Assembly (NCBI GenBank): GCA_010909165.1
Contig: MU008170.1
Coordinates: forward strand, 1,426,001 to 1,490,000
DNA: 64,000 nucleotides
Direction of reading: 5' to 3'
Source: Anthoceros angustus
Lineage: Eukaryota; Plantae; Anthocerotophyta
The translations under genes and the position numbers were made by a program. A model generated the notes under the pieces. It was not told where the DNA came from and searched no databases. It saw only the letters and a list, made by a program, of their open reading frames with translations. Below are positions 25,901 through 52,865 of this stretch, piece by piece. Position 1 is the first letter of the stretch; every line of letters starts with the position of its first letter.

Positions 25901-26672
25901 CTTCTCCAGTGACGTGAAGCAAAGCAGGAAGGAGCAAGGGAGGTCTCAGCGTGAATACGCCGGCGTGCGTGCCGCGAATCTGAGCTATGGGTGGATCGAG
26001 GAGGAGGTTGCGGCGTGGGTGTTGCGTGGAGTTGTTGCCGAGACGGGTTGAGAAGGTAGAGCGGTGCTAGGTGCGTGAACTCACGCAGGAACGCTGGCCG
26101 CTAAACTTGTTCGTGATGAAACTGGCTTCGGTTTCTCCAGATCGAGAAACCCGAGCGAGAGGGTCCGGTGTGGTTGCTGGCCCGTCCGGGGCTGCGGAGG
26201 GGCACACGCAGGGTTGCGGATCCGCCGGACCCAACATGATGAAGTCCGCTCAAAGCGATAGGTTGTAGAATCGGTATTCGCACGAGTCCATTCCACAATG
26301 GAACGAACCCGTTACTACATCGACATTGGGCCAGTGTGCGCCTGCTAGTCCGCTAGCAAAAGTTGCTTCACACCCAACCTCAAGGACGGTGGTACACTGC
26401 CTCGCCATGCTGGCAGGTGCACTTCCCATGTCCGGCTGGTGATGGATATTCGCCTCCACGCCGATGGCGGCCACAGGTCTCATGAGAGGAGGAGCCAAGT
26501 TCGAGCACAAGAGGATGGAGGGCCCGCCCGAGGCTCTTCCGGACCGATCGGTGTAGATGTTTTTTTGAGTTAGGAGCGCCCACCATGAGGTGGAGCGCAC
26601 TATGTTAGGATGTTTTTGGTTGAATGGCGACATACGCGATTCGGCAGTGTCTCAGGATCGGAAGTGGATTTG
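22984..26672. repeat. ~1.85-kb direct tandem duplication (22984-24830 / 24831-26672)
   Basis: Both copies start TCACGACAACGCAGCC and end AAGTGGATTTG; they differ by many small indels. Confidence 0.9.
25024..26370. mobile_element. ~1.35-kb nested insertion (solo-LTR-like or other), second copy at ~23175-24529
   Basis: Absent at the homologous site of element B (~28185-28195). Flanked by CACC on both sides (25020-25023, 26371-26374). One end reads TGAAGC on the minus strand. Contains a ~27-bp GGGTCCGACGGAGTAAGTCCG array. Confidence 0.6.
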
Positions 26673-29600
26673 TAGGACGCAGTGACATTGCGCTGTTTGA
26701 TGAGGTTGATGAGGGGGAGAGTGTGAAGCATTTTCAAATCTATAATACCTGCTTTGCACGGGTTTCCTTCCCGCAGTCGTGTTCGGTTTGAAACGACAAG
26801 TGGCGAGAGGGAGAAAGCTTTGCACGATTAGCATCTGTAGATATCACCTTCGATGGCCACCTTGTTTGGCACGCACACCAGATGCACGATGGGGAAATCA
26901 CCGGATCGAACATGTTCGAGGCTAACATCCGGGGCCACGCGATGGTGAAAGGGAAACGTAGTCTTCAACGACTACCATGCCCACAGTCGGGGGCTTCCAC
27001 CGGGGCCGAGACATGTCCGATCCGATATATATGTCCATGTGTGGTGCAGGAAAACCCTAAACGTGAGTATATATGTTTGACAAAAACCCTAAATGGCAGA
27101 AAGAAAAGTAGATAACGAGATCGGAACACTAGGGGGCAAGTTCCGAGACAAAAAAACTTTGTGGCGCCTACGGCCGTCGTCACCGATGTGGCGTACATGT
27201 CGGGAAGGAATCTTGAAGATGCGCAGCATCTTCATGTAGAAACAAAGAAAAACTTGTTACACACATCCGAAAAGAAAAACTTGTCACACATCAGCGAGAT
27301 CGACGAGATCGGTATTCATAATGAGATTTGGCAAGATGCTCACAAACATACGAGGAGTATGGAATACCGATCCACACCCGGAGTCCTGTGTGACTTTTCT
27401 TTTCTTTGCACGCCACGAGGATATGCCACGGAATCTTTTCGATACTCACGATAATACACGAGCAATGCCACATCGCCTTCACGGGTTCAGACGGGGAAAA
27501 ACATTCTATCACACGCTCATCGGCCCGGTGTTCCATGGTGTCATACATGTTTTTTGATGACGGTGTTAGGGTTTTCATCCCACACACAAACATGGCGGGC
27601 AACACATACACACGTGAACTTTTGTTCGCAGTATGGCGCTCACGAGAAACCGCCCGCAAATCCTCCGCTTACACATGCCGCTATATATGCAGGAAGGATG
27701 ATGGGAGCCCCACGCTTTGTGCTTGCCTACTAACATGCTGTGCTTGTTGGATGTATGATGCCTTCGCAAAGATGATCGTAACTTCACCTTTCAAACCGAA
27801 CACGATCAAGGGAAGGAAAGCAATGCATTACAGATCCGAACATGCTTCACACTATCCTCCTCAACCTCATCAAATGGCAATGTCAAGGCCCTACAAATCC
27901 ACTTCCAGCCCTACAGACACTGCCAGAATCACGCATGCCGCTCAACCAAAAACATCCGAATATAGTCTCGGCCACACCTCATGGTGGGAGCGCCAAACAA
28001 AAACACCTCTCACGCTACGCCGGGCGGAAGAGCCTCGAGGTGCCTCCATCCTCTTGTGCTCCGGAACTTGGCCTCCTCTCCGCTCAGGCCGCCTCCGCCG
28101 GAGGGGCCGAATGTCCCTCCGCACCGGACATGGGAGGTGCACCAGGTGCCATGGCAGGCTGTGCACCACCGTCCTCGTGAGGTTGGGGAGGTGTTCATCC
28201 CCGCACTAATGGGAAGGGGGACCCCGAACCGGAAGGCGTGGGGGGCGGAGAGGGTGGTGCCCACCACCAAAGAACCGACTTGCACATTGGCGATGGCATG
28301 GAGGATGCGCCCGCCGCTCATGATTCCATGAACGCCCGCGGCATTTCCCATCGGCCGCGTTGTCGGCCCGGCCGCCGAGCCCATCACTCCTCCATGTCGC
28401 AGCAAGGACCTCGTTGCGCACCTTCTCCACCACTTCAAGAAGGAGGCCGATGGCGCCTGGCCATGGCGGCGCCGATTGCAATCGCATTGACTTCGCTACC
28501 ATACTCCGGAGCTCCATTGAGCCGGATGCCCCACCTTGTTGCTTTGGGCGGTGGCCCCTCCCCACCGTGGCCCCATTCACGCCTCAAGCACCGGGTTCGC
28601 CTCCGCACTCTCGCCTGCATCTTGGCTCGCCCACCGCCCGCCACCGCTAGGTCTGCCGCCTCGCTCGGCACCTCTTCCTCTTCCGGTGTTTCACGCTGCC
28701 GCCGAGCTCAACGATGAGCTCGGCGCTTTCTCACTTTGCCGCCCTCCCGCCTCAGCCCGCCACTCCGCTCGATCTTCCGACGACGCCCACGTCAGATAGC
28801 GGATGCGAAGTTCCTGCTGTGATGACCTAGAGGGCCCGGGTCTCGCCCACTCCGGCCCACACCGCAAACCCAACTCGCAGACATATGAGTACTGTGCATG
28901 GCAAAGTTCACCACTTGCAACCAAAGATTACGAGGCATGACAATGACAATGAACCCACCAGCATTGTCAAACACATTGCGCCACGGCGGATTGTGCGTCA
29001 CTTACCATCGAGTCTTCCGATTGTTGTCCGGCTGGCCGCCCGCCTCCCCTTCGCTCGCAACCCACACGCCTCTCGTCCGGGCGCCTCCTCCTGCTGCTTC
29101 TCCTCCACTCACCGAAGCGCCCGACGGCCTTCCCCCGGAGCCGCTTGCCCCACCATCCTCACGCCTGCCCCACCTCCTCCGCCCGCCCCACGGGCACGCC
29201 CCGAGAAGGAGGCGCAAGGGATGCCCGTCCTCCGTCCCGCATGCGCCTGTTTGCAGCCTCGCTTGGCCGCAACCACATGGGTTGGCCTTGTTTCGCCTGC
29301 ACCGCAGGGTCAGGCGAATGTCCGCAGTCTCGAAGGTCGACGCAGCCTCGGATCGATGCCAGCATCCTCGACTGCAGCCATTGGCGTCGCATGTGCAGCC
29401 ACCCATCGCATTTATCGGCCGCAGCCGCCCCCACCCTAGGCGTCGCGACGCCGGCTCCTCCATCGCAGCCTCGCGGCCGCATGCAGTAACTCAGCCGCGA
29501 GCACTTTGCAGCGCTTTCGCCTCATAGCCCAGACTTCGGCATGCATGCCCGCCGCCTCCGTGTTTGGCGGAAACAGCATCCGCGCAGTTTGTGCCGCAAG

Positions 29601-30309
29601 CAAAGACCGGCCGACGCTTGTTGGGGATCGCCCAAGGTGGCACGCCTGGGCTGGAGGGCCACCAAGGGACGGATGCCACACCTGATCGCAGCTTCGCGAC
29701 CGAGCCCTCCGCCGCATGCTCGCCCGCCGGGGCCGCTGCCTGGCATTGCTCGCGGCCCTCAGCTGGCTGCCTCCACGCCGCCACCGCCTCCGCCGCCGCC
29801 ATTGCCGGAGCAGAAGCATTGCCCGCCCGCCCAGACGCCATTTCCTCATCGTCGCCACCGCCTCGGCCGGTGCGCCCATGCCCCCCCGGCCGCCATGCCT
29901 TCCGGCGCCCTCCGTCTGCCACATGGGTGTGTCGAGCCCATGTCTTCCACCTCGCCGCCCATATCGCAAAACGCCTATGCTCGTGAGCTTCCACTTTGAA
30001 AAGTGGCACTTGGAGTTGCCGAGTGAAGAGCGCCCAACTTGCGCCAAATCAAGAAAGCCGCCCTGTCCAGATTTCACCGGCATTTGGCACCCCAATGCAT
30101 CACTACCAGCGCACTGCTTTGGCCGCGCCAACCGCAGCTGCAATTTATTCGCCAACACCACTGCGATTGATTCGCATGTTGCCACCGCTTCAGCTTGCAG
30201 TAGCTCCAACCTTCTAACCGCTTACCTTGCTTGAGTCCGGACGCTGACCGCTAGTCAACCTACCACTTCCCTTTTTCCGATGTGTTCTCGCCATCTATCC
30301 ATGGCATCT

Positions 30310-31500
30310 ACAGACTTGCCTTTTCCCCGCCTTGCCCTATAAATAGGAAGAAAAGTCCTTCGATTTGGACCAATGTCACATGTGCATTGCCTATGGATGG
30401 CATCCACATGGTATGTATGCATGATGGCTGGTTGACATGTGATGCATGTGAACATTTCTACCTAGATGCTGTGCCATGGCACAATCCATGTATGTGCACC
30501 GTCATGCATGTGAGGAAGGGTACCATGACACATATAAAGGTCAGCGACTGTATATAGAGAATACATAAAAATCAAAACCCAAGGAAAAGGTGCCCATGAC
30601 ACAAGATCTGAGACATGGTCACATGCATCAGTCAACCACCCATCATGCATACATACCATGTGCATGTGCATCGTGATATATGTTCGACGCAGACTCGACA
30701 CATACATACGCCAACGAATCTATATACAAAAGACCTAAAAATCAAAACCCAAGGAAAATGTGCACATGGAAAGCACATGGTATGCATGCATGGATGGATG
30801 GTTGACATGTGAAGTATGTGAACATGTATACCTAGATGATGTGTCATGGGCACCTTTTCCATCTATGTGCATCGTGATGCATGTTCGCGGTGGTACTATG
30901 ACACATATATAGGTCGATCTATATTCAAAATACTAAACACCATAACCCAAGGAAAAGGGCAGTACGCTCTTCGGTGCATGAATATCAATTGTTCAAGGCC
31001 AAGGACAAGTGGGATTACAAATAGACCTAACTGCCTACCATCGACTGCGAGGTGGCACTCCATCAACAGTTCCCGGTTTTTTTTGCCTATATATGTGGGC
31101 TACCCAACCATGGACTCCAACTAACACACGCTTGCCTATCCCCGCCCTACCGCCTATATATAGGAAGAAACGTCCTTGGCCTTGGCCTTCCGATGGCATG
31201 CACATGGTATGCATGATGGAAGGTTGATGTCATGTGACCTAGAGATGGTGTCATGGCACAATCAACCTATGTGCATCGCGATGTTTGTAAGGCACAAGAT
31301 TACTACACATATATAGGTCACCGCACCTATATAGAAAATACGAAAATCATAAACCAAGGAAAAGGGCTAGGTTGTTAAGCATAAATATCATTTGTTCAAA
31401 GGCCAAGGAGAAGTAGGACTCTAAATAGATCTCAAGTGCCTACCATCGTGTGAGGTGGTGCTTCATCGAGAGTCCCTGGTTTTGCCTATATATACCCAAC
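30310..31500. repeat. Internal AT-richer repeat array of element B (left)
   Basis: Recurrent CACATGGTATGCATGCATGATGG, AAAACCCAAGGAAAAGG and TTGTTCAAGGCCAAGGA motifs. Confidence 0.7.
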
Positions 31501-33019
31501 CTATGATTCTTCGATTGTACATGTTTGTCTTAAAGGATAGGCAGCCATACTCCCTTCTCTTTTCCCCTCTTCTCACCTTTGGGAACCGCATTGTCTAGTG
31601 GGAGCGCGCGTCTGTCTTTAATGTCGCACCTATGTACAGCGTCATGCCTAAGCGGGTCGCAATGGTCGCATACCTACTTGTTTCATTTGGTGATTCTCGG
31701 TTTGGTCCAAAGGCCAAGGTCTTCTTCCATTCATTGATTGACATATTGGTGCAAAGGCCAAGGAGTTTTGTTCCCTTCATTGCCAATGTGAAAGCTCCAA
31801 AGGCCAATGAGTATTTTCCCTTTCATGACGGCCGATGGTCCAAAGGGAAGGCCTTGTCTTCGATATAGGCGTAAGGTGATAGGCACCGTGTAGTTGGGAA
31901 ATGGATTTTCTTCCTACACATGAATCGGACCATTCGGACCATTCGTCAATCCAGATTACATTTTAGTCCTTGGCCTTTGACGTCAACCGTATGTCATGGT
32001 CTCTTTGCAATGACGAAAACAACTGATGTTGTTCATCAGATTACTTTGACATGATACGACATGAAAACGAAACACCGTCGTGCTTTGGACCACCGACCAC
32101 TACTGTGCAAATTAGGCTTTGGACCGATTACAATTCGGCGATCCGCCTTCCTACCGCCATTCCACAACCACTCTTCCACTCGCGATCGCGCCATTGCTAT
32201 TATGAGCAGCACTGCCGCCATCGCCACCCCAGCAAGTTCACCGCTATGCCTCGGTGATTGCGGCGCCGCAATCAAAATGCACCTCCCTTTGAGGCCATTC
32301 CCCGCCCGCCTCCCCGATCGCCGCCTCCACCGCACATTCAAGGACTTCCTCCCACCGATAAGGCACACACCGACAACGATGATGGCGTGCGAGTGGGCTC
32401 ACCCATACGATGATGCACCAAACCGCCTTCCCTCCGCATCCGCAAAGATCGCTACCGCATCCCGTCTTCCACACGCAGCCCAAACTCCTCCCATGCCCAA
32501 GACCTCACCGGCACTGGAATGCAAGGCCCATACCGCCTGTCATCGCCGAGGAGCACCGGAACCGCAGCCGCCGACTTCCACGCCGCACACTTCTGCGTAG
32601 CTTGTCTCTTCCAGTCTCCTCTGATCCGATGTACAAGAAAAACTTTGAGCTGTCCACCTCGGATTGTCGAATGACAACAACCTTGCTCGCGAGCCGCCAC
32701 CGCAGCCATGCGCATCGTGCACGCCCACGTGGAAGACCTTCCGCCCAAAACCCCACCGTCGCACCTCTTTCCATTGCCCATTGTGATTGTCGCCGCAGCG
32801 ATTGGAACCTCCGCGATCGCATTTCCGCCCGCCATTCGACCGCCGCGAATGCCACCGCCAACCCTACGGTTCATATTGCGCCCGACCTTGTTTCGCCCAT
32901 TCTCAATTGGTGACGAAAGCACCACGCTGAATCGCCGTCTGCTCCACATGGTGTGCTTTTCGCCAGATCCGCCATCGCAAACCAAGAAATGAGTGCGGAC
33001 AGTCAAAGTCTCTTCACAT

Positions 33020-34770
33020 TAGTTTCTTGTGCGGGCCGACAAACACAACTTCGAAAACCACTTGCCGCCTCTAATGAAACGCAGTCCGACTCGAGGCCTG
33101 CCGCTCCCATACACGGAGTTCATGCGGATGGCTTCGCCACCCGCGTGGCCATCACGAGCTTGGAGACATAGAGCGGGAGCAGAGTGCAGAGCACGCCCTC
33201 GATCGAGGCGCCGCCCAAACGCCCGGAGGGGAACTTGCGACCACCATTGGCATCGCCTGCCAAGTAAACTCGCCGTGATGAAGGTGAACAGCGCCTATCG
33301 CCGAATGACATCTCCGACGATTTCACGTAACATTTCTAAACCGCGGCAAGGTGCCTCGAATCTCACTCCGCCAGAACGCACCTGCATCCATGCGTGGCTG
33401 AAGAACTTGGTGACACTCTCAAACGCACTCCCTAGACACTCCAACATGGCCCTCTTGTCCAGTGCACCACATGCCGAACCCTCTCCCACCCACCCGCCAA
33501 CGCGTGCACTCGGTGAATAAAAGCCGGTCCCGCACCTTCTTCCGCGCGCCACCGCCCCAGACATGCGAGGGCTTCAGTCGGCCACATGCTTGAAAAATCC
33601 GGGAGCCTGCTCGCCATCGGACCAACGGCCGATGAAATCGCAGCCGCCGCTTCCTCTTCGCCCGCCGAGGCTTCTTCTTGGAGGATGGCCATCACCGTGG
33701 TGGGTTGTCAACATATCCGCCTTAAAAGCCCTCTTCAACGCCCCTCTCGGCGCATCCTTCCACTCCTTGTGCACGCCATCCTTTTGGCTCCCTAGTGCGC
33801 GGCGAGTGTGGCAAATGTCATGGGACGACTCACCTCAATGCCATTTGCCGAAGATGTACAGTGTGGTCAAGAACATGGCTCGCATAAGGAGGCATCTCGC
33901 CGTGCCAAGACCGCACATTTTGCATCAATTGCCCAAATATCTTACCATGCGAGGGGTCGGATGCACCGTGGTGATGTGGTAATGTAGCACCGCCAACGCG
34001 CTCAACACGCCGCCCACAAATGACGGCGACTCCTGCACTGCTTCCAGCCTCACCGATGCACCGTCACAGAGGCCCGCTCGGCCCATCGCTCCAACCTCGT
34101 GGACTACATCACCGTTGTCCCCTGCACTGTGCAAGATCGCACTCTAAACGGTGGGAAAGGTCCCCCTCGCCGCGGAAATTGTCGAGCTTGTTGGCACTCC
34201 ATGCCCGCCTCAACCGCAATCACCAATGCCGCCGTGTATCAACCCCATCGAGGCACCAGCAAAATAATGGCACGGCCGCTCACCGAGGGTTAGGAGGTCC
34301 TCGAATCGCCGCCTCGCCCGCTCGGACGGCATACGAGCCTTCTGTCATCAAACCGCGATCGCAGCATGTGCGGCATCGCGGCGCCGCTCCGCCGCGAATG
34401 CCATAAGCCGCTCGCGCCGCCCTTTCTCCGCTCCCGCCAGACCGCCTGAAGCGACTGCGGTGGTGCGTGCGCCGGAGCATCTCCTCCTCATCCATCGCGA
34501 ACCTCAAGTTGGTGCTATTCGCTGTTCGCAACTCTTCCGCCATGGATCGAAGGTCCAGCGGTCGTCCATATCCGCGAAGGCGGACCAGCCCGTAGGAGAC
34601 GACCGCGCGAAGAACCCCTCGGATGGTGGCAGTCGAACATTTCCAGGCCCATGCCTTGCACCATCCGGATGCAAAGTAGCCCTTCGCCGAAGTTCGCTCG
34701 CGTCTCCACAAGATGTTGCAGCCTTGCAAGAGCAGCCGCCAGATTTGCTTTCGCACGCCATTCGCCTTCT
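33020..34770 (-). pseudogene. Frameshifted HECT-domain E3 ubiquitin ligase-like ORF inside element B
   Basis: Minus-strand motifs in HECT order: YFAG..GVD.GG (~34225-34268, cf. F.GE.G.D.GG), FVGGVLSALAVLHY..T.HPTP.MVRYL (~33930-34020), ALFTFITAS (~33268-33294, cf. LL.F.TG), CTLLPLYVSKLVMATRV.EAIRMNSVYG (~33103-33188, cf. TC...L.LP.Y.S...L..AI....FG). Boundaries approximate. Confidence 0.65.
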
Positions 34771-35299
34771 CCGCAATCGACCCAAAATTTCAAGAAAGAA
34801 GCTCCTCGATGGCTCAGGATTCACCGCGACGCTCCCTTCCCACCTGCGGTGGTGTGTGCCGGAGCTCTTCCACAACTAAGAAGGTCCGCTGCCATGCCGT
34901 TAGCGAGCCTCTCCCGCCTCCCGCGCGACGCCCATGAACGGCACGCTGCGCTGGCCCGCGCACGCCGGGACTTCGCGCCCGCCCACGCGGGCAGCTCACA
35001 GCGCTCGGCCGGCTGCTGCTGGCCTAGGGGAGGAAATTGTGCCTCCCCACATGTCCCGGGTCGAGGCAGTGGGATGCGGGTGCCTCCAAGGTCGTGGATG
35101 CCGGATACCGACGGGCGTTGAACTCTCCTCCGAGCGCCACCACGACCACCGCCGCCAACGCCCGCTCCATCCCATCACATCCACTTCTTCCTCCTCCCGA
35201 CCCAATCAACCTCCGGCGCGACGCCCGCTCCTCCCCTGCACTCTCCGCAGAGGTGTAAATTGGCTCACCCCATGTACAAGATCGATCACCAAGACTGTG

Positions 35300-36792
35300 A
35301 CGTCGGCTGGGAATTGACAGAATGTCACTGACACCGGACTAAGGCGACGCAATCGCAGACGTGACCACAAAGCAGCCTCGACCTGCACGCCCGGCAGTCG
35401 CCTTGAGCCTCGCACCCTCAACAATGGTCGACAGCGTTTCGCGGCGAATCCGCCCCGCCGCCGCCCACCGCATGCCCCAGGGCACCGTGGCTCCACCCCG
35501 CGAGGTCGCGGATTCCGACAACTCGCGCTCCACTCCCAAGTCGACCTTGGCAAAGCCGCGCCGCATTGTACCGCAATGCGTGCCAACGCCGCCCATCATG
35601 ACGGTGCGCCGCCGGCCCGACGGGCCGCCCGGATCCCGGAGATGGAATGGGATTGTCCCAACGCATGGAGGCGCGGCTCACCTCAAGGCGCTCATCCTCC
35701 CACCCGCCCGCGCGTGCGCGAAGATCCGCCCACCCATTCTCCGCCTATTGTGGAGGTGCACGCCACGTGTCTTCCGAAGACGCCATGGTGCTGTGGTGAA
35801 CACCGCTGCTGCCGCCGCCCGGCATCGCCCGCCAACCAATGCGTGGGCCGCCAACTGTGGACGAGACGCGCGTGGAAGGAGATCGATGGCGTGATGCCCG
35901 CAAGCATTGCGCTGCCGGGTGGGTGCGCCAGGAAAAGCGAAATCATTGTCATATTCCTCCGTGTCCCCGCTCGACATAATGCCGGCATGGGCATGGCATT
36001 CAAGGGCGAGGTGGCCGTCGCGCTGCAGCATAAGTTTTGGCTCACGAGACGCGCATTTGCATGATGTGGCCGCAATGCTTAACTTGCGCCGCCGCCATCT
36101 TGCAGCCGATGGCTGCCAGCCAACACCCTCATCGGCGATCGCCTCCTCGCCTGCTCAGAAGGACATGACATACCGGCGCTTGACTTTCCGCGCTCGCCGC
36201 CAAACATGCCACCGTCCCGATCATGGTTCCTTCCCGCCACACGCGAAGATGTCAGACATATGTCCCAATAACATATTGGGTCCGATATGTTCCAAATAAA
36301 CTATTGGCGGAAGTGCAATGATGCGCTATCGGCGCGCCGACGGTGTCCGGACCGCACACCAATATCCGACGCTAGGAACAATTCATTTGTGCCTTGCTTA
36401 TTCAAATGCCCTTCATCCGATGTCTATGCGCGGGGCATGAGCCGACCACCGTGGTGGGAGGTGCGCTATGCTTTGGAGACGGAGAATGCGGCATGCCCGC
36501 ATGGCCATTGCACAACCATCCGCCGGATCCTTCCTCCAACATGCCTTTTAGGCATCCGCCATAATCTACGCACCATCTCGCTATGCATTAATATCCCTTC
36601 CGTAGTCCGCGCATATTCTCGCAGTTGTACCGGCTCATGAAGTCCATCCCATATGCTTGCCATAAAATCCGCGAACATGGCCCATCTTGGCGCCAACATC
36701 CGCACTTCATTTTCGATGGCATGGCGCCCTTCCGCCTCCGGTTCTGGAGATTTGTCTGTCATCCTCGACCCATCCCGCCGGGTCCTCCCCAC
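35300..36792 (-). pseudogene. Frameshifted IS3EU-type DDE transposase (integrase core)
   Basis: Across frameshifts: LREYARTTEGILMHSEMVRRL (HTH-like N-terminus), ANSL-W-NI-D (~36280-36308, cf. PNSLWHIDG), EEAIADEGVGW..RLQDGGG (~36080-36150, cf. A...G.P.RVR.D.G.EN), LHNRR...WADLR (~35718-35757, cf. S.HN.RIER.W.D). Confidence 0.65.
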
Positions 36793-37399
36793 CTACTGCC
36801 CGCCACGACCGCGGCCCGATCGCCACCGCAGGAGAGAGCCCGCCGGCTGTGTCGAGCCCGCCCCAAGATGCGCCACTCCGCCACCAACAACAGCCTAACC
36901 CACCAATGAACCCCAACCCACACCAATAACCCAAACGCCGCCCCCCAACCCGCCCCCCAACAAAAGAAGCGAAAATGCCACCGATTGCCCAAAATGCCAA
37001 ATACATAAAATTTATAAATGCGAATAGTGCAAAATGCCCAAACGCCTTTTAAATTGCCTAAAATGCCTTAAATTCATCAAATGCAAAATAAGAATAGCCA
37101 TGCATTATGGGAGACAAGTGCAATTGATGGAGTGATGCAATGGAGGCATGGCGCTGATGCGGTATGAGACGACACGGTGCCACACGTTGCCCACACTATG
37201 AAAGACGAGACGCCGCACACGGGTGCCACGCGCTCACTATGGAGCTTGAATGCAGTAAGGAGGAATGACCGCAATCATACAGGCACTTGCGAAACTACAC
37301 GATTGACAATGAATAAAGCATGAGGGTGCATAATCGTTATATATAGACATGAACAATGGTCCCTTGTCGCAGAGCAAAGGAAAAGGTCAAATGTTGGTT

Positions 37400-38350
37400 G
37401 CATGATGCCCCACCGATCCCATATGTCACAAGGAGAAAGAAGGGTTGCACGTATGTATGCCTTCATCGAGAGACATGTATAATGCAAGAATCATTAGAAA
37501 CATATATAGACATGTGGTCTCTCATGAAACACCAATGGTTAAACACGCCACCTCTCACCGATGGTGCTGGATCATTTACGATCCTACTTTTCCTTGGCCT
37601 CAACAAATGATATTTATGTACACAACATGCTCGCCTTTCCAAGACACAAAGAAGAGACGTCAGCGATTTAAGTATGGACCTTTTCCATCCAAAACATCTA
37701 CAATCCAAGAATCAATGGCTAGGTAGGCCACATATAGACATCTGGGTGGTCAAGCCCAGGAAATTAAATCACGTACACCGCACCATGGTAGGCACCGCAA
37801 ATCTATTTATAATCATACTTCCTTGGCCTTGAACAAATGATAATTATGCACCAAACACTTTTCCTTGGGTTTTTGATTTTCGTATTTTCAATATATATCA
37901 CGACCTATATATGTGTCATAGTACTGCGAACATGCATCACGATGTACATAGATTGACATGAGCATGGTAGACATGTTCACACATCGCATGTCAAGCATGC
38001 AACATGACATGCATACATGTGCCATCAATGGGCAATGAATATAGATTTCCAGGTTTTTCCTATGGGTTATAGGGGAGGGATAGGCACCGTATGAATCCAT
38101 GGTTGGGCAGCCCATATATAGGAAAACCATGGGTCTATGTAATCCTACTCTCCTGGCTGAATAAATAATGTATACCACCAACACCATGCCTTTTCCTTGG
38201 GGTGATTTAGGTTTTTCAGACCGATGACCTATATGTGTCATATGTCATAGTACCGCACATATCATCATGCAAAAGACCATGGCATGGTATGTTCACATGA
38301 CTTGGTGAGGTTTACATTAGTGATTGACCACCATATATGTCTCGCAGTAG
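37400..38350. repeat. Internal repeat array of element B (right), inverted relative to 30310-31500
   Basis: CCTACTTTTCCTTGGCCTCAACAAATGATATTT (~37583) is the inverse of ATATCATTTGTTCAAAGGCCAAGGAGAAGTAGG (~31385). TTTTCCTTGGGTTTTTGATTTT (~37860) is the inverse of AAAATCAAAACCCAAGGAAAA (~30570, ~30740). Confidence 0.75.
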
Positions 38351-38899
38351 AAATACCATGCACATGGACGCGAAGATGGATTGCGCAAATGAATGGTAGG
38401 TTCAGTATAATAAAGTGTACGGGTTTGGTCATGGAAATGAATCAGTGAAGTGGTGGGGACACATATGCAAAACTAAGCATTCATTACCGCAAATATTCAT
38501 GTGTTTTCATGCATCATGCATACCTGCATTTTACGGGTTTGTAGCCCTTCTTCGTGAAAGGAGTTCGATCCCATCATCCAAAGATATCAAACCTTCACCA
38601 CGGACGCCGGAAGATGGTGGTGAAATGAAAATTGGGAGGGAATGGGAACGCTGAGGGATGCATCCCACAGGATGTACTGTGCCGCGCATCCCCACCAGTT
38701 AGATGCAGTGAAACGAGGACCGTGCAGTGGGTGGGTTTTTGAATAGGGATTGAGCAGACGATCGCCCACCGCGGTGGATCGCCGCTCCCCAACCGCGGAG
38801 AAGGAATAGGGGACGGCCGCGGTGGGAAGGGAAACGCGGGGCGCATTAGTTTACGGAAGGAAGGCGCGGTGGCGGGTGGTAAAAGGGTGCAACGCGCCC

Positions 38900-41800
38900 G
38901 CCCGTCTGGAGGATGATGAGGAACACAAGATCGCGGCCATGAGCGAGGCGGCGCCCAGTGGGTTGGTGTGTTCGGCCGGCGGTTGCGCTTGAAGAGTGGA
39001 AGCCGGACAACAGTAGTAGGTAGCTCCACACATGTAGATGACCGCGAAATCACGGTGATGGATGCGCAGTCCGCCGGCAAGCACGGCGAGGGCGGGGGAA
39101 GGGCAGGAGGAATGGGAGATGCAAAGCTCGCAGTACATTCTCGCGTGGCCTATGGTTCCCATCAACTATTGGGAGTGTCCGAGTTCTTGCATTTGTGGAG
39201 GACCATCAAAGCCGTGTCTCGCATGGAGGGCTATCCAGAAACTTGCCGCCTCACGACCTGACCGCGAGGGACGGACCGGATGGAGTGGCGGTGGACAAAT
39301 TATCGCGAGAGTGCTACCGACCGGTGGAGTGCCACATTTTCATGCACCAAGTGTTCGACTTGGCCGTCAATGGAAGAGGTACCGGAAAGGAGCGAATGAC
39401 GACCTTAGGATTTGGTTTTCCTGTGCACGACTGCACCGACCTGTGGAGAGGTGGCCTATGAGGTATTGGAATTGATTTCGCGGTATGGAGAAATGGAATG
39501 GAATGAGAATGGAGCGTTGTTCGAGGATATCAACCGCAGACGGAGAACCATGTTATGGCGTACTGGCGGTGGATGCGAGCGCGGGCGGAAGTAACCGCGC
39601 CGTGAAGGCAAAAAATGTGGGGTTGAAGGGTGATGGGCGTGAGGAATTGCGGGGCCATGGTGCGTGGAACGCGCGATGGGCGGGGTTGCGAGGCGCGGCT
39701 GCGATTGCAGCTGGACGCGGGTGCAAGGGGCGGATCGCTGTAAGTGCGCGCGCAGCCTGCACGCGAAATGAGTGTGCGCCGGCATCGCGTGCACGGCGGA
39801 TCGCAAGGAGTGCGCGGCGCGCGCGACGGCATCAATGTTTGCTGAAAATGCACGTGTGGAAATGGCAGGTGCTCGCATCGCATCGCATGACCGACTGGCG
39901 GTGCGGCGACTACATGTTGGCATATGCCCGCAGCTGCCGGCGATGATGCGATGCGATGGGAGGAGGCGAAGGCGGCGCTGCTGGGGATCTCGACGATCCG
40001 AGGCCGCAAGTGGACCTATGATTCCGCACATTCAATGCCCGCCATGATGGTGCTCAAACGGGAGGCGGTGGAGGAGGAGGTGCGGCACGCGCGCCAGAAG
40101 GGAGCCCGCGAGAAAGAGGGGAGGGGAGGGGAGGGGTGGGAGGCCATGGACATCCCGTGCGCCGTCCGGAAGGTGGAGTCAGGGCCGCGGTGGCGATCAA
40201 CCGATCGGGCGCACCCACCTTGGGAGGGGCGCTGACGCCGATCGTGGAGGTGCACCAAGTGGAGAGAGGTCACAGCGCTGGCGTCGATCCGCTGGTACCC
40301 ATGAATTCTCAAACCTCTTGATTGCAGGTGGATTGCACAGCGGCTCCATTGCCCGACCATGCTTGGTACGGCTCAAGGAGGCGACACCCGCCCACAACGA
40401 GACATGTGCAAGGGCGCTATGTGGCCTCCAAAGGTGCATTGCGCGTCGGCCCGTGGGAGCCTCACTCTTGTGTGTGCAGGGTATGATCCATTCGAGTTTG
40501 CGGCTACGACCGTGAGAGCGTGGCGGACGCCGCCACCGAGCACGATCATGCGAGGCGGCGAGGATGGTGGCCCGCCGGGCCGCAGGATGCCGCAGCGAAG
40601 CGGAGGAAGGGCGCGGCGACGGCGATGCCGCGCCGAATTGGAGCCGTGAGGGGCTTGCTGGCGCCGTGACTGCCCCGGCGAACGCCGTCCCGCCGGCGCG
40701 GCGAAGAGGATCCGCATGCGGACGGGCGGTGGCGCGGAGGCCGTGGAAGCGACGCTGGCTCCGACGGTGGAGCCGGTGGGAGAGTCCCGCAAGAATCCAC
40801 TCCCGACCGCGTGAGCGCATGGCACCGGGAGGGGAGAAATGTGGCGGTCCGGGAAATGGGTACTCATGGTATTGGAGGTTCAGATTGTCCGCAATGCACA
40901 AAGATTTCTTTCGCTGTGGAGAGATGATTGTGGCCCACAGCCACCGAGTTGGAGGTGGAGTCAAGGTTGGGCGCCGCCATGCAACGCATGGGCACAATGC
41001 CGGAACGCGCCTAAAGAATCGGCATGGCACGTTGGTGCCGTTGTGGATGCACAAGACCGTGATTGCACCGCGGCTCGACCATCGAGATAGGAGCGCCGGT
41101 GACCATGCTCGTGAGAAGTCAATGGAGGCTTCGTGGGAGGAGAAGAGAAGGACGCCTTTTTCGCAATCACCGCTGCTCAAAGTGGAGGAAAGCAGTTGGA
41201 TGGCACCCTATGGTCGCAGTGGAGGGAATGATAGCGATGGATGTCCCGCAATCGGAGAAGTGGAGTTGGAAGCTAGTGGTGAGGCGGTTGGAATGGGACC
41301 GGTGCATCGGACCGCCACAAAGTGGCATGGAACATGAGGCTCGCTTTCTGTGGGACATTGAGCATCCTCCTGTGGAGTTGGATCAACACAATTTTTGTGG
41401 GCGCTCATTGCTGTACAACAACAGACGAGCATTTCATATGTTACATGGACTTCAATCGAACGAAGAGGAGTATTCCAAACATGGAAGCATGTGACCGATC
41501 ATCGTGGCATGCCACACAATGGGGGTCGACGGATACGCCCGATAGCCGGAAGATCCCATGCCTTTTGTTCGCACCGAGGACCGCTGGAACCGCGCATTGA
41601 GGTAAGGCGCGTTGTCGCTTTGCGGGTTTGCAAGCGCAATCAAGAGTGAAGATAGAGAGGCCATCGACATCGGCGGGGTAGAAATGGGCATGGACGGAAG
41701 TGTTGCACGCCGTGAAGCGCCCATTCTAGATTGTTCAAACGGACAGTGGTGCGTATACTGTTTGAAGTCGGAGTGCGCACTTGTGGTGCACTTCAAACAA

Positions 41801-43900
41801 TGAATGAAACGGAAACCAAAAGTAAACCGTGATAGCTACGGGCGCCACCAGAACTTGCTGCAGGCCTACCTGCAGATGCAGCGCTGTGAAACCCGCCCGC
41901 AAGCGCTAATCGCGGACCGCCCCGTGGAACAAAAATCGGAGTGGCTATACGCTAACATGATCGAGCTCCCCGCCTCAGAAAACCCTTGGCGGACATGCCA
42001 TTACTCGGAAAGTGTTAGGAGGATCGAAATCGGCCTACTGCTCACCGAGAGGTGCATTTGGGGTTTGAACTGGAGGAAGGCGCATGGGCAAGGAAAAAGC
42101 GCCTATCAGGAAGTAGGCGGCGAGGTCCGAGGGTGTTGAGGCCACCAAGTTCCACCTTGGCCATCACGTGGGGCAAAAACGCAGTGAAGGGTGCCCATGG
42201 ACGCGGGGCCTTCCGCAAAGGAGGAAGATGGTGGCGCGCCAAAGACCGCCAAGAGGTCATAAGCCCATCATCACGCGACGGTGAAAACTTGTGCAATTTC
42301 GCGAGGAGCCGGGGGATGAGAAGGTGGAGATGGAGGGATGCATAGGAGACGGGCGGCGCGCCTTACACCGCAAACGTATGATTTGGCGCAAAGACTTGCG
42401 GTGGAGACCATTGAAAGGCCTACCGACGGAGCTAGCTGCAGCCTTGAGCACGGTGACGAGGCTCCCGTGATCGGCACACGGCATGGCGCTGGGTGTATGG
42501 GAGGTTGTCCGTGGAGGAGGTGTGCACGCCGATTGCCACGCACACACCCATCACCCCAAGACGGGAACGCTGAATACGATTCGCGGTGCAGCCGCAATCG
42601 GATGGAATCGAAATCCCAAGGAGGCAGTCACGGAGGCGCGCGCTTGATGCGAGCACATGGCACGATTTGGCCGACAAGGCGCATCCGCTGGCCCAAGACA
42701 CCAATGCGACACCCATGTACATGTGGCATATGGATTGTAAGTGCGTGATGGAGGGGCTCGCGATGTTCGCAGTTCGCGGTGGAAGAAGTGATTGCGTGAG
42801 TTGGATCGCAATGCCTGTGGCCTCGCGGCGCAGCTTATGACAAGATGTACCAATTCTACTTGAGTGCATGGGGCCATAGATGGGGCAACCCATTACGCCC
42901 CGTTGGTACCGGAGGATAACAAGCGGAACGACGATTTTCAACGCCTATGTGGAAGCAAAGTGAGGAAGTTTGGGCATCCGCAGGATCTTGGCGGACAAAG
43001 CAGAGCACAACCTAATAGAGGCGATATGAACCGAGCGAGGCCAAGGGCACATGGAAGCAACTTCATCCGCGCCCCTCCGCACAACTGTAAAAGTTAGGAG
43101 GTTGGTCTGCTTTGTCCGCATGACACGGTGAAGTGTTGAATGCGGATTGTTGGCAGGATTGAGCATTTCGGTCCTTGGGAGAGAAGTGGGCATTCCTCTA
43201 CAAGGGTACATGATGGATATGGTGAGGAGCAGAATCGACATCACCAACCCCTCGGCACATCCATTCCCGCACGCGTGACCTTCATGCCCAATGGCGAGGG
43301 CGAGCTCGAGCGCTGGAGGTGTATGGAATAGGCACCGGTGCGGAAGATGGCAGCCGATGAGACATTCCCGCCATGTGCTCGCAATCGCATTCAAGAAGAA
43401 GGTCGACTACAAGGGTGGGTGCGACCACCCGCATATGGGGTGAGGAGGACGATGGAGGAGTTCGATGTGGGTGGCCTCAAGATGCACAAAACGTGGCCCC
43501 TCGAGATGCCACCACCAGCATAGAATTGCCGAGCGGGTGAGCAATCGCAGTCGCCTGTCATTTATTTTGTCTCAGGTTAAAGATTGTGGAGGCGGGAGGG
43601 CGATCACGCCATTATGCGTGCACGGAATCGAATCGTATGGGCCATGGGTTGTGCAGAACCGCAGATGGCGAGGACAATGCATATGCAAAGGGATTGCGGT
43701 GACATGGACTTCCTCCGGACATGTATCGCGACATGGCACTAACAACACTGCAGGGAGTGCAGAGGGACGATTGCAATACCTCCACCGGATTCGAGGTCAC
43801 CCCGGGCGTGGACGGCCATCACCCGCCGCGGTCTATGGTGCACGAGGTGTGAGGGGCGTGGCCCAGAGCCCTTCCGGAGTGAGCTAGGTGTGGGCCGGAG
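38900..43900 (+). pseudogene. Degenerate GC-rich coding region with Ulp1-like protease and Cys-cluster (SWIM/KDZ-like) motifs
   Basis: TDWRCGDYMLAYAR (39890-39931) resembles the C48 catalytic-Cys motif. DCPQC, WCRCGC, WCVYCLKSECALVVH (~41746-41791), DCKCV (~42733) and LCPH..GEVLNAD (~43110-43147) resemble CxC/KDZ N-terminal motifs. Heavily frameshifted; no His motif or KDZ catalytic core found. Confidence 0.35.
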
Positions 43901-44435
43901 AAAATTGATTTGTGCGCTCACCATGACCGAGCGGTGATGCGCCACCATGACACAGGGCGGTGACAATTTGGATTTGTTTGTCGCGTTTTGAGAGTTGAGC
44001 CCGTGGTGGCTTTGTTGTGGTGGAATGTAAAGGCGGTTGTGAAGATGGTGTGCGCCACCGCGAGGCCCGTATGGCTGGCCTCAGCGCACGACGCTGGATG
44101 GTCGGAGATAGCCAGCGCCGAGGCGCATATGGCGCCGACGCTTATCAGTACAGCCGTATGCCCGCGCGGCAGCATACAGCCCTTGTGCCTCCTCCACGCT
44201 ATCTCCCATAAAGCCCTGGTGACGGCCGTGATGGCAAACTGACGGGCAGATGGGGTCATGCGAATGGATGTCCGATGGCCCATGCCCTCACAGCGAAAAC
44301 ATTGTGTGTCACAACCACAAAAGATTCCTGACAGACACCACATGCTTAGTGACGAGATCGGGACACGAGGGCAGGCCGACGACCGATGTCGTCAAGTGTG
44401 AAGTTTTCCCGCCGTATGCGGCCGAAAAACTTCTT

Positions 44436-46509
44436 TGGTCACAATGGAAAAAAACCCTAAAGGGCTTCCTGACGAGATCGGTATTCCATAGAGGAGTAAT
44501 GTGGGTCCAATAAAATCTTATACACCTACATGTCATCGTCTTCCATAGACCTAGGTGGATGCACAGGCATTGTTTTGATTCCATTCAAGCTGCCGGATCG
44601 GGCTCATCGGAGGCAGCCCCGTATGGTGCGGCCGTACAAGTTTGTGGGCGTCTTGCGATAGTCTGGTGTTACATTCACTCATCCTCGACAGCGGCCCCTC
44701 GATCGATGGCCACAGTATGGCAACCGGACCCGTTAGGACCCAACAAATTGGTGTGTACAGGATTCTACGGAGCTCCTGCTCACCTCATCTTAGGGAGTCA
44801 ACCCTGGCAAACAAAGCCTCCAGGTGCAGCAGTGTAAGGAGCCCAGCACTTCCACTTCCTAGAAAATGTGGTGGGACGGTTTTCCAGCGATGGTCGTTGC
44901 CAGGAGCAGGAGCACTTGTGGCAACAATTTTTCTGGACCCTACCATGTGGTGGGACAACAGACGAGATAAGAAGAGCTCCCGTTCGCCTGACTTCCGGCG
45001 TAAGGGGTCCGGCGAGGTGTGGTTAAACAACATGTTTAAGCCAGCTTGGGTTGATGAGCAGCTCGTTTCCTTGGATATGCAGATGGGGTCATGGTTCCTT
45101 CCAGTCCAGCTCTCGGATAAGCCTGGCAGGCGTGCAGGATCGGAATGGGTACTGCCGTGAGCACGTTATGTCAGCAGGGAAGCTTTCTGAGGCCGTTGGA
45201 GCCCTGGAATCTCTGGCGCAGACAGACTCTGCTTCTCAGTCTCTGTTTACACTGTGCTGAAAACTGTGTACAGCTAAGAAGGATTTGGTTGTGGGGCGAC
45301 GAGTTCATGATCTCACTGTCAAACTTGGGTACGAGTCGAATGCATACTTGGGGAACCATATCTTGCGCATGTATGCATGTGGAGGTAGGCTAGAGGAGGC
45401 CATGGATGTGTTCACCAGGGTGGCAAACCAGATGTTCATGTGGTTTCCATCATCTCTGGTCACAATGGAAAACCCTAAAGGGCTTCCTGACGAGATCGGT
45501 ATTCCATAGAGGAGTAATGTGGGTCCAATAAAATCTTATACACCTACATGTCATCGTCTTCCATAGACCTAGGTGGATGCACAGGCATTGTTTTGATTCC
45601 ATTCAAGCTGCCGGATCGGGCTCATCGGAGGCAGCCCCGTATGGTGCGGCCGTACAAGTTTGTGGGCGTCTTGCGATAGTCTGGTGTTACATTCACTCAT
45701 CCTCGGACAGCGGCCCCTCGATCGATGGCCACAGTATGGCAACCGGACCCTGGGTTTAGGACCCAACAAATTGGTGTTTGTACAGGGATTCTACCTGGAG
45801 TTCCCGCTCACCTCATTGTAGGGAGTCAACCTCTGGCAAACAAATCCTCCAGGTGCTGCAGTGGAAGGAGCTCAGCACTTCCAGTTCCTAGAAAAGGTGT
45901 GGGTGTGGACGGGATTTCCAGCGATGGTCGTTGCCAGGAGCAGGAGCACTTGTGGCAACAATTTTTTCTGGAGCCTACCCTGTGGTGGGACAACAGACGA
46001 GATAAGAAGACCCCCCGTTCGCCTGACTTCCGGCGTAAGGGGTCCGGCGAGGTGCTGTGGTTAAACAGCATGTTTAAGCCAGCTTGGGTTGATGAGGAGC
46101 TCGTTTCCTTGGATATGCAGATGGGTCTTGGTTCCCCTCCCTCCGGATCCAGCTCTCTGGATAAGCCTGGCAGGCGTGCAGAATCGGAGATGGGCTTCAT
46201 AGCCGTGAGCACGTTATGTGAGCAGGGGAAGCTCTCTGAGGCTGTTGGAGCTCTGGAATCTTTGGGGCAAACAGACTCTGCTGTTCCTCAGACTCTGTTT
46301 TGCACTGTTCTGAAATTGTGTACAGCTAAGAAGGATTTGGTTCTGGGGCGACGAGTTCATGAACTCATTGTCAAACTTGGGTACGAGTCGAATGCATATT
46401 TGGGAAATCATATCCTGCGCATGTATGCAGGTGGAGGTAGGCTAGAGGAGGCCATGGATGTGTTCACCAGGGTAGGCAAACCAGATGTTCATGTGGTTTC
46501 CATAATCTC
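44436..46509. repeat. ~1.03-kb tandem duplication covering the element-B right end and the PPR 5' region
   Basis: Copy 1 (44436-45456) is a deletion-rich version of copy 2 (45457-46509); both contain GGTATTCCATAGAGGAGTAATG. Confidence 0.9.
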
Positions 46510-48366
46510 TGCACATGCTAAACATGGGAAGCCTAAAGAGGCCGTACAACTGTACCATGAGATGTGTAGGTCAGGAGTGAAGGCGAATGGTCATGTCTTT
46601 GTAGCTGCCCTTCAAGCTTGTACATTTGCTGCCGACTTGGAATCTGGCAGGAAAGTGCACTTTGATGTGTTGCACAGTGGCATTCCTAATAACTTGTTTG
46701 TTGACAACTGCCTGGTGGACATGTATGCAAAATGTGGCGCACTGAAAGATGCACGCCAGGTCTTTGACAGCATGGCTACAAAGGATGTGGTGACATGGAA
46801 TGCCCTGATATCTGGTTATGTAAAATGTGGTGAACTGAAACATGCACGCCACGTTTTTGACAGCATGAAGGTGAAGAATGTGGTGACATGGACGGCTCTG
46901 ATTGCTGGGTATGCACAGCAAGGTCTGGGCCATGAGGCGCTTGTTGTGTATGAACAAATGGAGGAGGGCCTCATTTTGGCTAACCACTGCTTTCTGAAGG
47001 CCTGCAAGCACTGGTGCCTTACAGAAGGGCAGGCAGCTGCACTCACAGATTGTTGAAAGAGGACTGCTGGATAACGGTGGGCAACTGCCTGGTGGACATG
47101 TATGCAAAATGTGGTGAACTGGAAGATGCACGCCAGGTTTTGACAGCATGGCCACAAAGGATGTGGTGACATGGAATGCCCTGATTGCTGGGTATGCACA
47201 GCAAGGACTCGGCCAAGAGGCGCTTGTTGTGTATGGACAAATGGAGGAGGGCCTCATTTTGGCTGACCATGTTACTTTTGCCTTCTGAAGGCCTGTGCAA
47301 GCACTGGTGCCTTACAGAAGGGCAGGCAGCTGCACTCACAGATTGTGGAAGAGGACTGCTGGATAACGTAGTGTTGGGCACCTGCCTGGTGGACATGTAT
47401 GCAAAATGTGGTGAACTGGAAGATGCACGCCAGGTTTTGACAGCATGAACACAAAGGATGTGGTGACATGGACCGCCCTGATATCTGGGTATGGATGAAG
47501 GTCACAAGGCACTAGCTTGTTTTGAGGAGATGTTAGTTGCCGGCATTCAGCCTGATGGTGCTACTTTTACTTGCATTCTAGTGGCATGCAGTCATCAGGG
47601 CCTGGTCCATGAGGGTCGCAAGCACTTTGATTCCATGGCCGAACAGCATGGCATCAAACCTTCACTTGAGCACTACAATTGCATGATTGATCTTCTTGGG
47701 CGTGCAGGCCAATTAGATGAGGCAGAGAAGATGCTATTATCATGCGAGGACCAAAGTAATGTTGTGGGATTGACGTCTTTGTTGAATGCCTGCAAAAGTC
47801 ATGGGAATATAGAGAAGGCGATGTGGTGTTTTGAAAGCATTGTTAGGCTGGACCCCCAGTGGGCGCCAGCCTATGTGCTCATGGCCAATGCCTATGCAGA
47901 TGCAGGTAGGTGGACCGATGTAGAGAGGGTTGAAACACAGAGAAGGGTAGCAGGAGCTAACAAGAAACCTGCAGTGGCGACCATTGAGGTGAATCAGGAG
48001 GTACATAAATTTATGGTGGGGGAAAGGAGAGAGGATATTGCGCTTAAGGTAGAGAGCACGAATGCACGTGTGAAACAGGAAGGAGGCCACGTACCTCACA
48101 CAAAGCTGGTGTTGAAGCCACTGCCTGAGGAGGAAAAGGAAGATGCGCTTTGTGGGCATGCTGAGAAGCTAGCTCTGGCGTTCGGTCTCTTGAACACTCC
48201 GAGTGGGACACCTCTGGTGGTAACGAAGAATCTACGCATGTGCAGTGACTGCCACAGTTCCACGGAGATCATGTCAAGGCTTGAAGAGAGAGACATTGTT
48301 GTAAGGGATGGGTACCGTGTGCATCGATTCGCAGCTGGGTCTTGCAGTTGTAAGGGTCGACCGTGA
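45577..48366 (+). CDS. PLS-class PPR protein with N-terminal OSB-type PDF motif and GRP-type DYW:KP deaminase domain; frameshifted as assembled
   Basis: PDF motif LWQQFFLEPTLWWDNRRDKKTPRSPDFRRKGSGEVLWL...PAWV (45947-46102); PPR motifs LVDMYAKCG...ARQVFD...DVVTWNALI; E domain; KKPAVATIEV; HAEKLALAFGL; KNLRMCSDCH; C-terminus CSCKGRP. Frameshifts at ~45730 and in near-identical repeats 46970-47500. Confidence 0.92.
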
Positions 48367-50090: not shown

Positions 50091-50482
50091 GTTAGATCTG
50101 TAAATCCACCCGGACACAGAACAGTGGCACAGCACAGAAAGACAAAAAGGAGAGACACTACTTTATCTTCACCGACAAGAAACTACCATTGTACTACTGG
50201 GAGCACTGCAACTGCCCACATCATGCATGCATGCGCACACCAGCTTAAGATAGCCTCGTCAACCCCGGAATATCTCGCACCCAACCACAGATTCTGTGCG
50301 GCCTAGTCTACAGCAAGCGGGGACGTCCAGACGGAGAGCAAGCTTTGACATCTAGTGCTGCAAGGATGCTACTAATCGCTCGCTTCGAGATCCTGGGAAA
50401 CGCCCACAACGATCCATAAGGCCGTCCTCCACACCCCCGGACTCTCCACCAAGCACCCAGTCCGAGGTCCAACACGTCCACA

Positions 50483-52128
50483 ATGGCCCTCTCCACCAAC
50501 CAATCGTCGCAATTCCATGCGACCTTGCGATGTTGCGCCAAGACGCCACTTGCGGTCGCTGCCTTGCCAGTCGCCCACTGCACCCCGCGGTCTCCAGCCC
50601 GGGCTCTCTCGCCACCTGCTCTGCCAGCGCAGAGCAGGAAATGCCGGCAGCTGGAGCTGCAGCTTCCTCGACATCGATATCGCCACTCCCTCGCCATCGC
50701 CCGAGCTGCACTTTCTGGGCTGGCCGCACAGGAGGATGTGGAGAAGGTGGTGGAAGAGCCCGCGAACTGGACGAAAGCACAGAGGGCGGTGGTGGACAGG
50801 ACCCTGGACCTGGCCAACCTGAAGCCATCTCCAGCCCGGCGGAAGGAGCTGGTCGAACAGGCCCGCGCCGGGGCGGAAATCGGCTTCTTCTACGTGAAGA
50901 ACTTCGGGGTGGATCAGTCCCTCCTGGACGAGGTCCGGGCCGAGTCCGAGCTTTTCTTCGCCCAGTCTTTGGAGGAGAGGGCCAAGACGCGGTCCGTGCT
51001 CGCCGTCCAGGACGACGGGCGGGCGTACGGCTACGCCGCCGACTTCGCCTGCAACAGGGATAACCGCGGGCCAGCCGCAGCCATCTCGGAGCCCAAGATC
51101 CGGGAAACGTTCCGGATCCGAATGTACCCGGAGAACACCCGGATCCCGGAGTCCTGGCCTCCCGCCATGCCCCGTTTGAAGGAAAAGCTCTCCCTGTACG
51201 GGGAACGCGTCCACGCTGCTGCCCACTTCATCGCAGGCCTGCTCCTGGAAGGCCTGGGCCTCCCGGAGTCCTACATCACCGACACGTACGGGCCGCTGCT
51301 GCTCAACTTGCTGGTCGCCAGGCGCCGGTCGGTGGAACGCGGCCTGCCCACGCACGTCGACACCAACCTCTTCAACCTCATCCTCTTCGACGGCGTGAGG
51401 GGCCTGCAGTTCTACGTGGACGGGGAGTGGATCACCACGCCGTCGCTCACGGATCGGGCCCTGTTCAACATCGGGGAGGATTTCGAGGTCGGTGTTGTCA
51501 TGGGAGTTGTTTACACAAGGGTTGAAGGAGAGAATTGGATTGAAGGAAGTTTGAGACGAATGGCCTGGATGTGTGTGTGACCGTAGCATTGCATCCACCC
51601 ATCGAACTCCCACTAGGAAATCCAAAGAGCTAGAGCCCAGAAAGAAAACAGGGAGTGCAGTGCGCCCAGAAAACTGAGACGACCACACTGCATGCATTCA
51701 GATGTTGCAAATGTTTCCCACCGTCAAGCATACAACATGCATGGATGGTATGTGATTGATGAATGTACGTGTCACTGAGTGGATTGCAGACTTTGAGCAA
51801 CGGGAGGTACCACGGCATCTACCACAGAGTTTCGGCGGGACCTCGGATCCGGCAGACGCTGCTCACCACAGTCGATGTTGGGCGGGAGGAGATCATTGCG
51901 CCCGCGCCGCAACTCCTCAACGCCCAGAATCCTGCTCGATACAAGGCCAGAAAGCAGGGGGACAGGACCTCGGACCTGCTTTATGCGCTTCAGAACTCGC
52001 TGAAGCATGACATGACCAAAACCACGATCGTCGTCGATCCCGACCACCACCTCGACTACACCAAGAACGTGTATCATCACGGATCAGAGGAGAAGCTCTA
52101 CATGAATGGTGTGCCGGTGCTGGATTAG
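50483..52128 (+). CDS. 2-oxoglutarate/Fe(II)-dependent dioxygenase (DOXC-like) with probable plastid transit peptide; exons 50483-51487 and 51790-52128
   Basis: A.AEIGFFYVKNFGV (DIOX_N), PTHVD (HxD), GLQFYVDGEW, NIGEDFE|TLSNGRYHGIYHRV (distal His), RQT at the RxS position. Phase-0 GT-AG intron. Ala/Arg/Ser/Pro-rich N-terminus. Confidence 0.9.
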
Positions 52129-52760: not shown

Positions 52761-52865
52761 ATTTTGTGTTTCTTTTCAAAGCTGAAGCTCGACGCCCTAA
52801 GCTGCCATATTTGGTTTTTTTTTTTTGTGTGTAAGCCATTTTCATCTTAGACTTGGCAATTGGTA

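Follow-up and report, generated by a model that had tools for sequence, protein, structure and literature searches.

A 17.1-kb segment of contig MU008170.1 (assembly GCA_010909165.1) raises the question of whether a land plant carries a very large IS3EU transposon with its own transposase and cargo genes, as a preliminary description made from the sequence had proposed. The segment, called element B here, occupies positions 27358-44490 of the stretch that was analysed (contig positions 1,426,001 to 1,490,000; 64,000 nucleotides), which is referred to as the window and on which all coordinates below are based. Analyses of its ends, reading frames, neighbours and internal structure led to the conclusion that element B is a genuine insertion with clear boundaries, unremarkable in kind and without an enzyme of its own, and that it probably belongs to a transposon group already known.

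That element B is a mobile element was concluded from its ends. The same 15-mer, TATGGAATACCGATC, is present exactly at both ends in inverted orientation, and sites with up to two mismatches to this 15-mer number four in the window, compared with 0.05 expected from shuffled sequences. Identical copies of GAGGAG abut the element outside both ends. The same pair of ends, together with its 6-bp duplication, was recovered by an unbiased scan of the whole window for terminal inverted repeats (TIRs) and target-site duplications (TSDs), in which exact inverted 10-mers with flanking direct repeats of 4-10 bp were considered. Altogether, the 42 bases of TIR and TSD are still perfect, and both the 15-bp TIR and the 6-bp TSD of the preliminary description were confirmed. 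Element B is a genuine cut-and-paste DNA transposon insertion bounded by TIR and TSD. Its parts are listed below, where A denotes a neighbouring element of the same family.

27352-27357, left TSD GAGGAG, identical to 44491-44496
27358-27372, plus strand, left TIR TATGGAATACCGATC, an 'R-type' end with subterminal sequence resembling the right end of A
27781-30312, minus strand, family body, a non-coding inverted homologue (67-75% identity) of A 20934-26801
30313-44296, 14-kb block absent from A, with no TIR or TSD at its edges and only the 3-bp ACA at both
44305-44490, minus strand, 'L-type' subterminal region, homologous to the left end of A (20750-20930)
44476-44490, minus strand, right TIR, the reverse complement of TATGGAATACCGATC
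44491-44496, right TSD GAGGAG

The second question was whether element B encodes a transposase or any other protein. Integrase-core motifs had been placed on the minus strand at 35.3-36.8 kb. Stop-to-stop frames of 30300-44300 were collected from both strands (115 frames of at least 70 amino acids and 139 of 38-69 amino acids), and all 254 were compared with Pfam. None matched a family at E values up to 0.01, the best E value of 0.02 being noise, and the matches up to E = 1 were scattered noise that included nothing like rve, DDE, reverse transcriptase (RT), HECT or transposase domains. NCBIfam, including its IS3 and IS481 transposase models, gave no match among the 115 frames of at least 70 amino acids, and Pfam gave none for the open reading frames (ORFs) of at least 85 amino acids in A and the left part of element B. 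As a positive control, host exons of similar size were detected by the same Pfam procedure, namely those encoding K_trans, Nop/Prp31, Haspin kinase, PPR/E/DYW and RING domains.

Tests that are independent of protein families gave similar results. No frame in element B exceeded the length expected from the local stop-codon frequency, whereas the host genes did exceed it. The long frames are located on the C-rich strand, as composition alone would yield, and their translations are strings rich in R, P, A and S. A GC-phase test for coding signal was negative in element B, and in the alignment of A with B the mismatches had neither third-position bias nor codon phase, with gaps in 10-15% of the columns. 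Rfam and tRNA scans found nothing inside element B. No homologue was found in large protein databases for the frame at 27394-28206 (plus strand). The two most protein-like minus-strand frames of the claimed integrase stretch, 35681-36154 and 36469-36792, were searched in databases of 5.8 and 1.8 billion proteins; the former had no homologue, and the latter had three weak matches in an exhaustive HMMER search, the best of which (E = 1e-7) was a summed match to a TPR-repeat NACHT protein for which pairwise BLASTP gave an E value of 0.12.

These results bear directly on the proposal that element B is an autonomous or formerly autonomous 17-kb IS3EU element that encodes an integrase-type transposase (minus strand, 35.3-36.8 kb) as well as cargo genes. 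Its termini and TSD are right for IS3EU, but no rve, IS3 or other domain was found in any frame of at least 38 amino acids, the minus-strand frames of the claimed stretch are without homologues, the TPR-repeat match included once it is judged by its pairwise E value, and the ORFs there are no longer than expected from composition. Heavy decay after insertion also agrees poorly with the perfect TIR and TSD, and the proposal is considered extremely unlikely. Neither the integrase-core motifs nor the term 'cargo-carrying' could be upheld, since no protein family and no real homologue was found for the former and no gene of any kind is recognisable inside element B. The agreement that had been claimed among termini, TSD and transposase motifs held for the termini and the TSD, while no transposase or integrase remnant was detected.

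Whether a gene might have been present at insertion and lost afterwards was judged from the intact TIR and TSD and from a repeated copy of the right end of element B.

45453-45508, minus strand, right end of element B present a second time (outermost 56-59 bp), within a tandem duplication of about 1 kb

The duplication, of about 1.02 kb (44432-45458 and 45453-46511; 91.6% identity overall), takes in the transposon's outermost 59 bp, the region upstream of a PPR gene and the 5' part of that gene, and the copy of the 15-mer at 45494-45508 belongs to this duplicated junction, not to a separate element. Identity between the copies is approximately 100% in the first 300 bp or so and 86-95% beyond that, and the identical portion points to gene conversion or to an effect of the assembly. 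Because 59 bp of the end of element B are contained in the duplication, the insertion preceded the duplication. The copies of this later duplication have diverged by about 8%, and therefore the insertion is not recent, yet much too little time has passed for a gene to have disappeared. With a perfect TIR and TSD and a divergence of only about 8% in the duplication, post-insertion decay cannot explain the absence of a gene; element B was already enzyme-less when it inserted.

The third question was which group of transposons element B belongs to. Its termini, TATGG...CCATA, are of the TA...TA type, as are those of element A and of a related miniature element, C. IS3EU termini are always TA..TA and IS3EU TSDs are usually 6 bp (PMC6839031, PMC10045372), and TA..TA ends combined with a 6-bp TSD have been described as specific for IS3EU/GingerRoot (PMC10045372, PMC6839031), which form one lineage with 99% bootstrap support (PMC10045372). 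GingerRoot was described from Selaginella lepidophylla by Cerbin et al. (2019), who detected it in mosses too, that is, in lycophytes and bryophytes; it has a TSD of 6 bp (6-8 bp), mostly TA..TA ends, TIRs of 100-150 bp and a span of 3.9-12.9 kb (PMC6839031). The TAT..ATA ends and 6-bp TSD that had been taken as an IS3EU signature match the published signature (PMC10045372, PMC6839031). The presence of IS3EU in a land plant had been presented as new and is not, because GingerRoot, which belongs to the same lineage (PMC10045372), has been published for mosses and clubmosses, and has been known from lycophytes and bryophytes since 2019 (PMC6839031). No publication linking IS3EU to hornworts was found in the literature collection that was searched.

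Both neighbouring elements share features with element B.

20750-27320, plus strand, neighbouring family member A, 6.6 kb, in opposite orientation to element B
16297-17269, related 973-bp miniature element C, with a 52-nt TIR (92%) starting TATGGCATACC and the exact 5-bp TSD TAAAT

Element A starts at 20750 with the same 15-mer as element B and has a 20-bp TIR, TATGGAATACCGATCTCGTC, the right copy of which lacks 1 bp; its right end at 27302-27320 is degenerate (gacgagatcggtattcata), and its flanks, CTGAG and ATGAG, match at four of five positions. A and B lie tail to tail with 37 bp of unrelated DNA between them. By blastn, B 27781-28187 aligned inverted to A 26801-26373, B 28193-29248 to A 23171-22106, and B 29774-30312 to A 21517-20934, all within a range of 67-75% identity, and the region B 44305-44490 was 76% identical to A 20930-20750 over 186 nt and 91% identical over the outer 91 nt. 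Because their homologous segments are collinear in inverted orientation and their ends match, each element having one L-type and one R-type end, A and B are two diverged copies of one family. About 3.1 kb of element B (the ends plus 27358-30312) is family sequence common with A. About 1.85 kb is also duplicated in tandem inside element A (23631-23685, for example, corresponds to 25491-25545). G-rich minisatellites of 25-27 bp were observed inside element A at 23342-23512 and 25187-25369, and a 97-bp direct repeat was observed inside element C.

An 11-nt terminal motif, TATGGNATACC, is common to the ends of A, B and C. It was found at six window sites, compared with 0.05 expected, and always at ends of this group, which makes three elements with such ends in one window. 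The duplications in this local family are 5-6 bp long, exactly 6 bp for B, exactly 5 bp for C, and 4/5 matching for A, which fits 5 bp better than 6. A scan of metagenome contigs with the 20-nt TIR gave only two matches of 20-21 nt, which are attributable to chance.

The long similarity between the outer ends of A and B permits another delimitation, in which positions 20750-44490 are one element of 23.7 kb bounded by long L-type inverted repeats and the ends at 27320 and 27358 are internal. The L-type inverted repeat (about 180 nt long, with 91% identity over 91 nt) is indeed far longer than the 15-bp TIR and has a length typical of GingerRoot TIRs. However, the outer flanks of such an element mismatch (GCTGAG versus GAGGAG, 4/6), and the perfect 6-bp TSD belongs to the pair 27358/44490. 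Moreover, A and B are collinear and each have one end of either type, as expected of two complete copies, and the two inner ends face outward across the 37 bp of unrelated DNA. A single element of 23.7 kb is thus very unlikely, and the similarity of 91-180 nt joins same-type ends of A and B, not the two ends of one element.

Like GingerRoot/IS3EU elements, element B has 5'-TA...TA-3' termini and a 6-bp TSD and occurs in a non-seed land plant, and it resembles the many copies of that group that are without a DDE gene. On the basis of these ends and this TSD, element B is probably a non-autonomous transposon of the IS3EU/GingerRoot type. Several observations weigh against this assignment by ends and TSD. 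No transposase of the IS3EU/GingerRoot group could be connected with these termini, and the DDE (rve clade) transposase that is expected of autonomous members was not found in element B, although exons shorter than 38 amino acids or a heavily frameshifted gene would evade the ORF-based scans. The TIRs are short (15 bp in B, 20 bp in A and 52 nt in C) compared with those of 100-150 bp in Selaginella GingerRoot. Element B, at 17.1 kb, is longer than the GingerRoot range of 3.9-12.9 kb, and its relatives in the window have 5-bp duplications, exact in C and the better fit for the flanks of A.

Some of these observations would also be expected if the three elements represented a different or undescribed TIR superfamily with no more than TA..TA ends and a TSD of 5-6 bp in common with IS3EU/GingerRoot. 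The lack of a transposase linked to the ends, the variable TSD length (6, 5 and about 5 bp) and the short TIRs are compatible with that possibility, and short TSDs are also made by other integrase-like superfamilies. Nevertheless, TA..TA ends with a 6-bp TSD have been described as specific for IS3EU/GingerRoot, whose occurrence in bryophytes and lycophytes is documented, and a separate superfamily appears unlikely. hAT and Mutator elements were rejected as candidates; their TSDs are 8 bp or 9-11 bp, whereas the TSD here is 6 bp, and no hAT or MULE transposase domain was found.

If element B is a non-autonomous IS3EU/GingerRoot-type transposon, a transposase encoded elsewhere in the genome would recognise the TATGGNATACC termini, excise the element and insert it at GAGGAG through a staggered cut of 6 bp; the duplication of 6 bp is itself observed. 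Such a process would resemble those of Ginger1, Ginger2/TDD and the integrases of long terminal repeat (LTR) retrotransposons, with which it would share integrase-type chemistry, staggered cuts of 4-6 bp and dinucleotide termini of the TG/TA..CA/TA type.

The last question concerns the size of element B, most of which is due to an internal block with the following parts.

30313-31493, plus strand, left edge of the block, with an AT-rich repeat unit of about 400 bp in three tandem copies
32050-36850, GC-rich block (55-70% GC), C-rich on the plus strand, covering the claimed integrase stretch, with no protein signal
37548-38037, minus strand, inverted copy of the AT-rich repeat unit
38550-44250, GC-rich block (53-74% GC), G-rich on the plus strand, with no recognisable gene

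Relative to A, the block 30313-44296 enters element B at a single point, between A 20930 and A 20934, where no flanking sequence was lost and where neither a TIR nor a TSD but only ACA is found on both sides. Sensitive blastn and tblastx revealed nothing similar to the block elsewhere in the window, and the matches were confined to the AT-rich repeats of the block itself. The 17 kb are not uniform: about 3.1 kb is family sequence, and the other 14 kb is extra non-coding DNA that consists of strand-skewed GC-rich sequence and AT-rich repeats. The block is either a later insert in the lineage of B or ancestral sequence that was lost from the lineage of A by a deletion at the ACA microhomology, and these two histories are about equally likely. 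A and B resemble non-autonomous deletion derivatives and miniature inverted-repeat transposable elements of TIR transposons, such as Ds in relation to Ac, which retain only the ends, have no enzyme, are mobilised in trans and have microhomology at the internal breakpoint. Unlike in the Ds and Ac pair, the long copy here is also enzyme-less, and neither A nor B is a master element.

Other mobile elements were considered as the source of the claimed integrase signal or of the block and rejected. A nested LTR retrotransposon, considered for the integrase signal, would have long terminal direct repeats, TG..CA ends and a 5-bp TSD. [quoted passage not shown] Helitrons have 5'-TC...CTRR-3' ends, insert between A and T and make no TSD. 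The edges of the block, GACTTGCC...CAGCGAAA, fit this pattern in neither orientation, the insertion site is A|A, and no Rep or helicase domain was found in the ORFs of the block. A nested element at 30897-37920, which was suggested by a perfect 20-bp inverted repeat, was rejected because the flanking GTAC is palindromic and the sequence upstream is part of the same repeat unit.

If this plant lineage, probably a hornwort lineage, contained a branch of IS3EU/GingerRoot that routinely moves wholly non-coding, strand-skewed GC-rich payloads of 17-30 kb by means of short TATGGNATACC ends and a flexible 5-6-bp cut, this would be of wider importance, since gene-free transposons of such size would be unusual and the superfamily would be extended to a land-plant lineage not named in the 2019 description; such a generalisation is doubtful. 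As it stands, the result matters little beyond annotation: a well-bounded enzyme-less member and two relatives are added to a group known from non-seed land plants, and the claim of a gene-carrying giant element is corrected. The size of the non-coding payload is of modest interest, and the 11-nt terminal motif and the mixed 5- and 6-bp duplications could aid genome-wide curation of the family.

Contamination of the contig had been named as a possible source of error, and it was excluded by the host genes, which mark plant nuclear DNA. Those in the window encode a KUP/HAK potassium transporter, Prp31, a Haspin-like kinase, a PPR-E-DYW editing factor, a RING protein and the U2 small nuclear RNA (snRNA).

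1508-4481, plus strand, exons of the KUP/HAK potassium transporter
6114-7268, plus strand, Prp31
9346-10959, minus strand, Haspin-like kinase
13004-13199, plus strand, full-length U2 spliceosomal snRNA gene (Rfam RF00004, 169 bits)
45680-48363, plus strand, PPR-E-DYW editing-factor gene, with its frame broken between 47053 and 47482 (frame change and stop)
52851-53549, plus strand, RING-H2 protein

The window is nuclear DNA of a non-seed land plant. The Prp31 exon shares 84% identity with proteins of liverworts and mosses and 88% with one further transcript, and in a small Prp31 tree the window exon and that transcript pair together, apart from liverworts, mosses, lycophytes, ferns and seed plants. 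This placement of the exon is consistent with a hornwort.

Element B is located 1.2 kb upstream of the PPR-DYW gene. The broken frame of this gene may reflect a pseudogene, an intron or an assembly error; repeats of 93 nt that correspond to PPR motifs are present at 46723-46915. One ORF of at least 85 amino acids outside element B matched DIOX_N/2OG-FeII oxygenase in Pfam. The region 50311-51697 is GC-rich (59%) and has long ORFs of up to 441 amino acids that overlap one another and occupy both strands, with no Pfam match; it is compositionally like the transposon interiors and may be another repeat.

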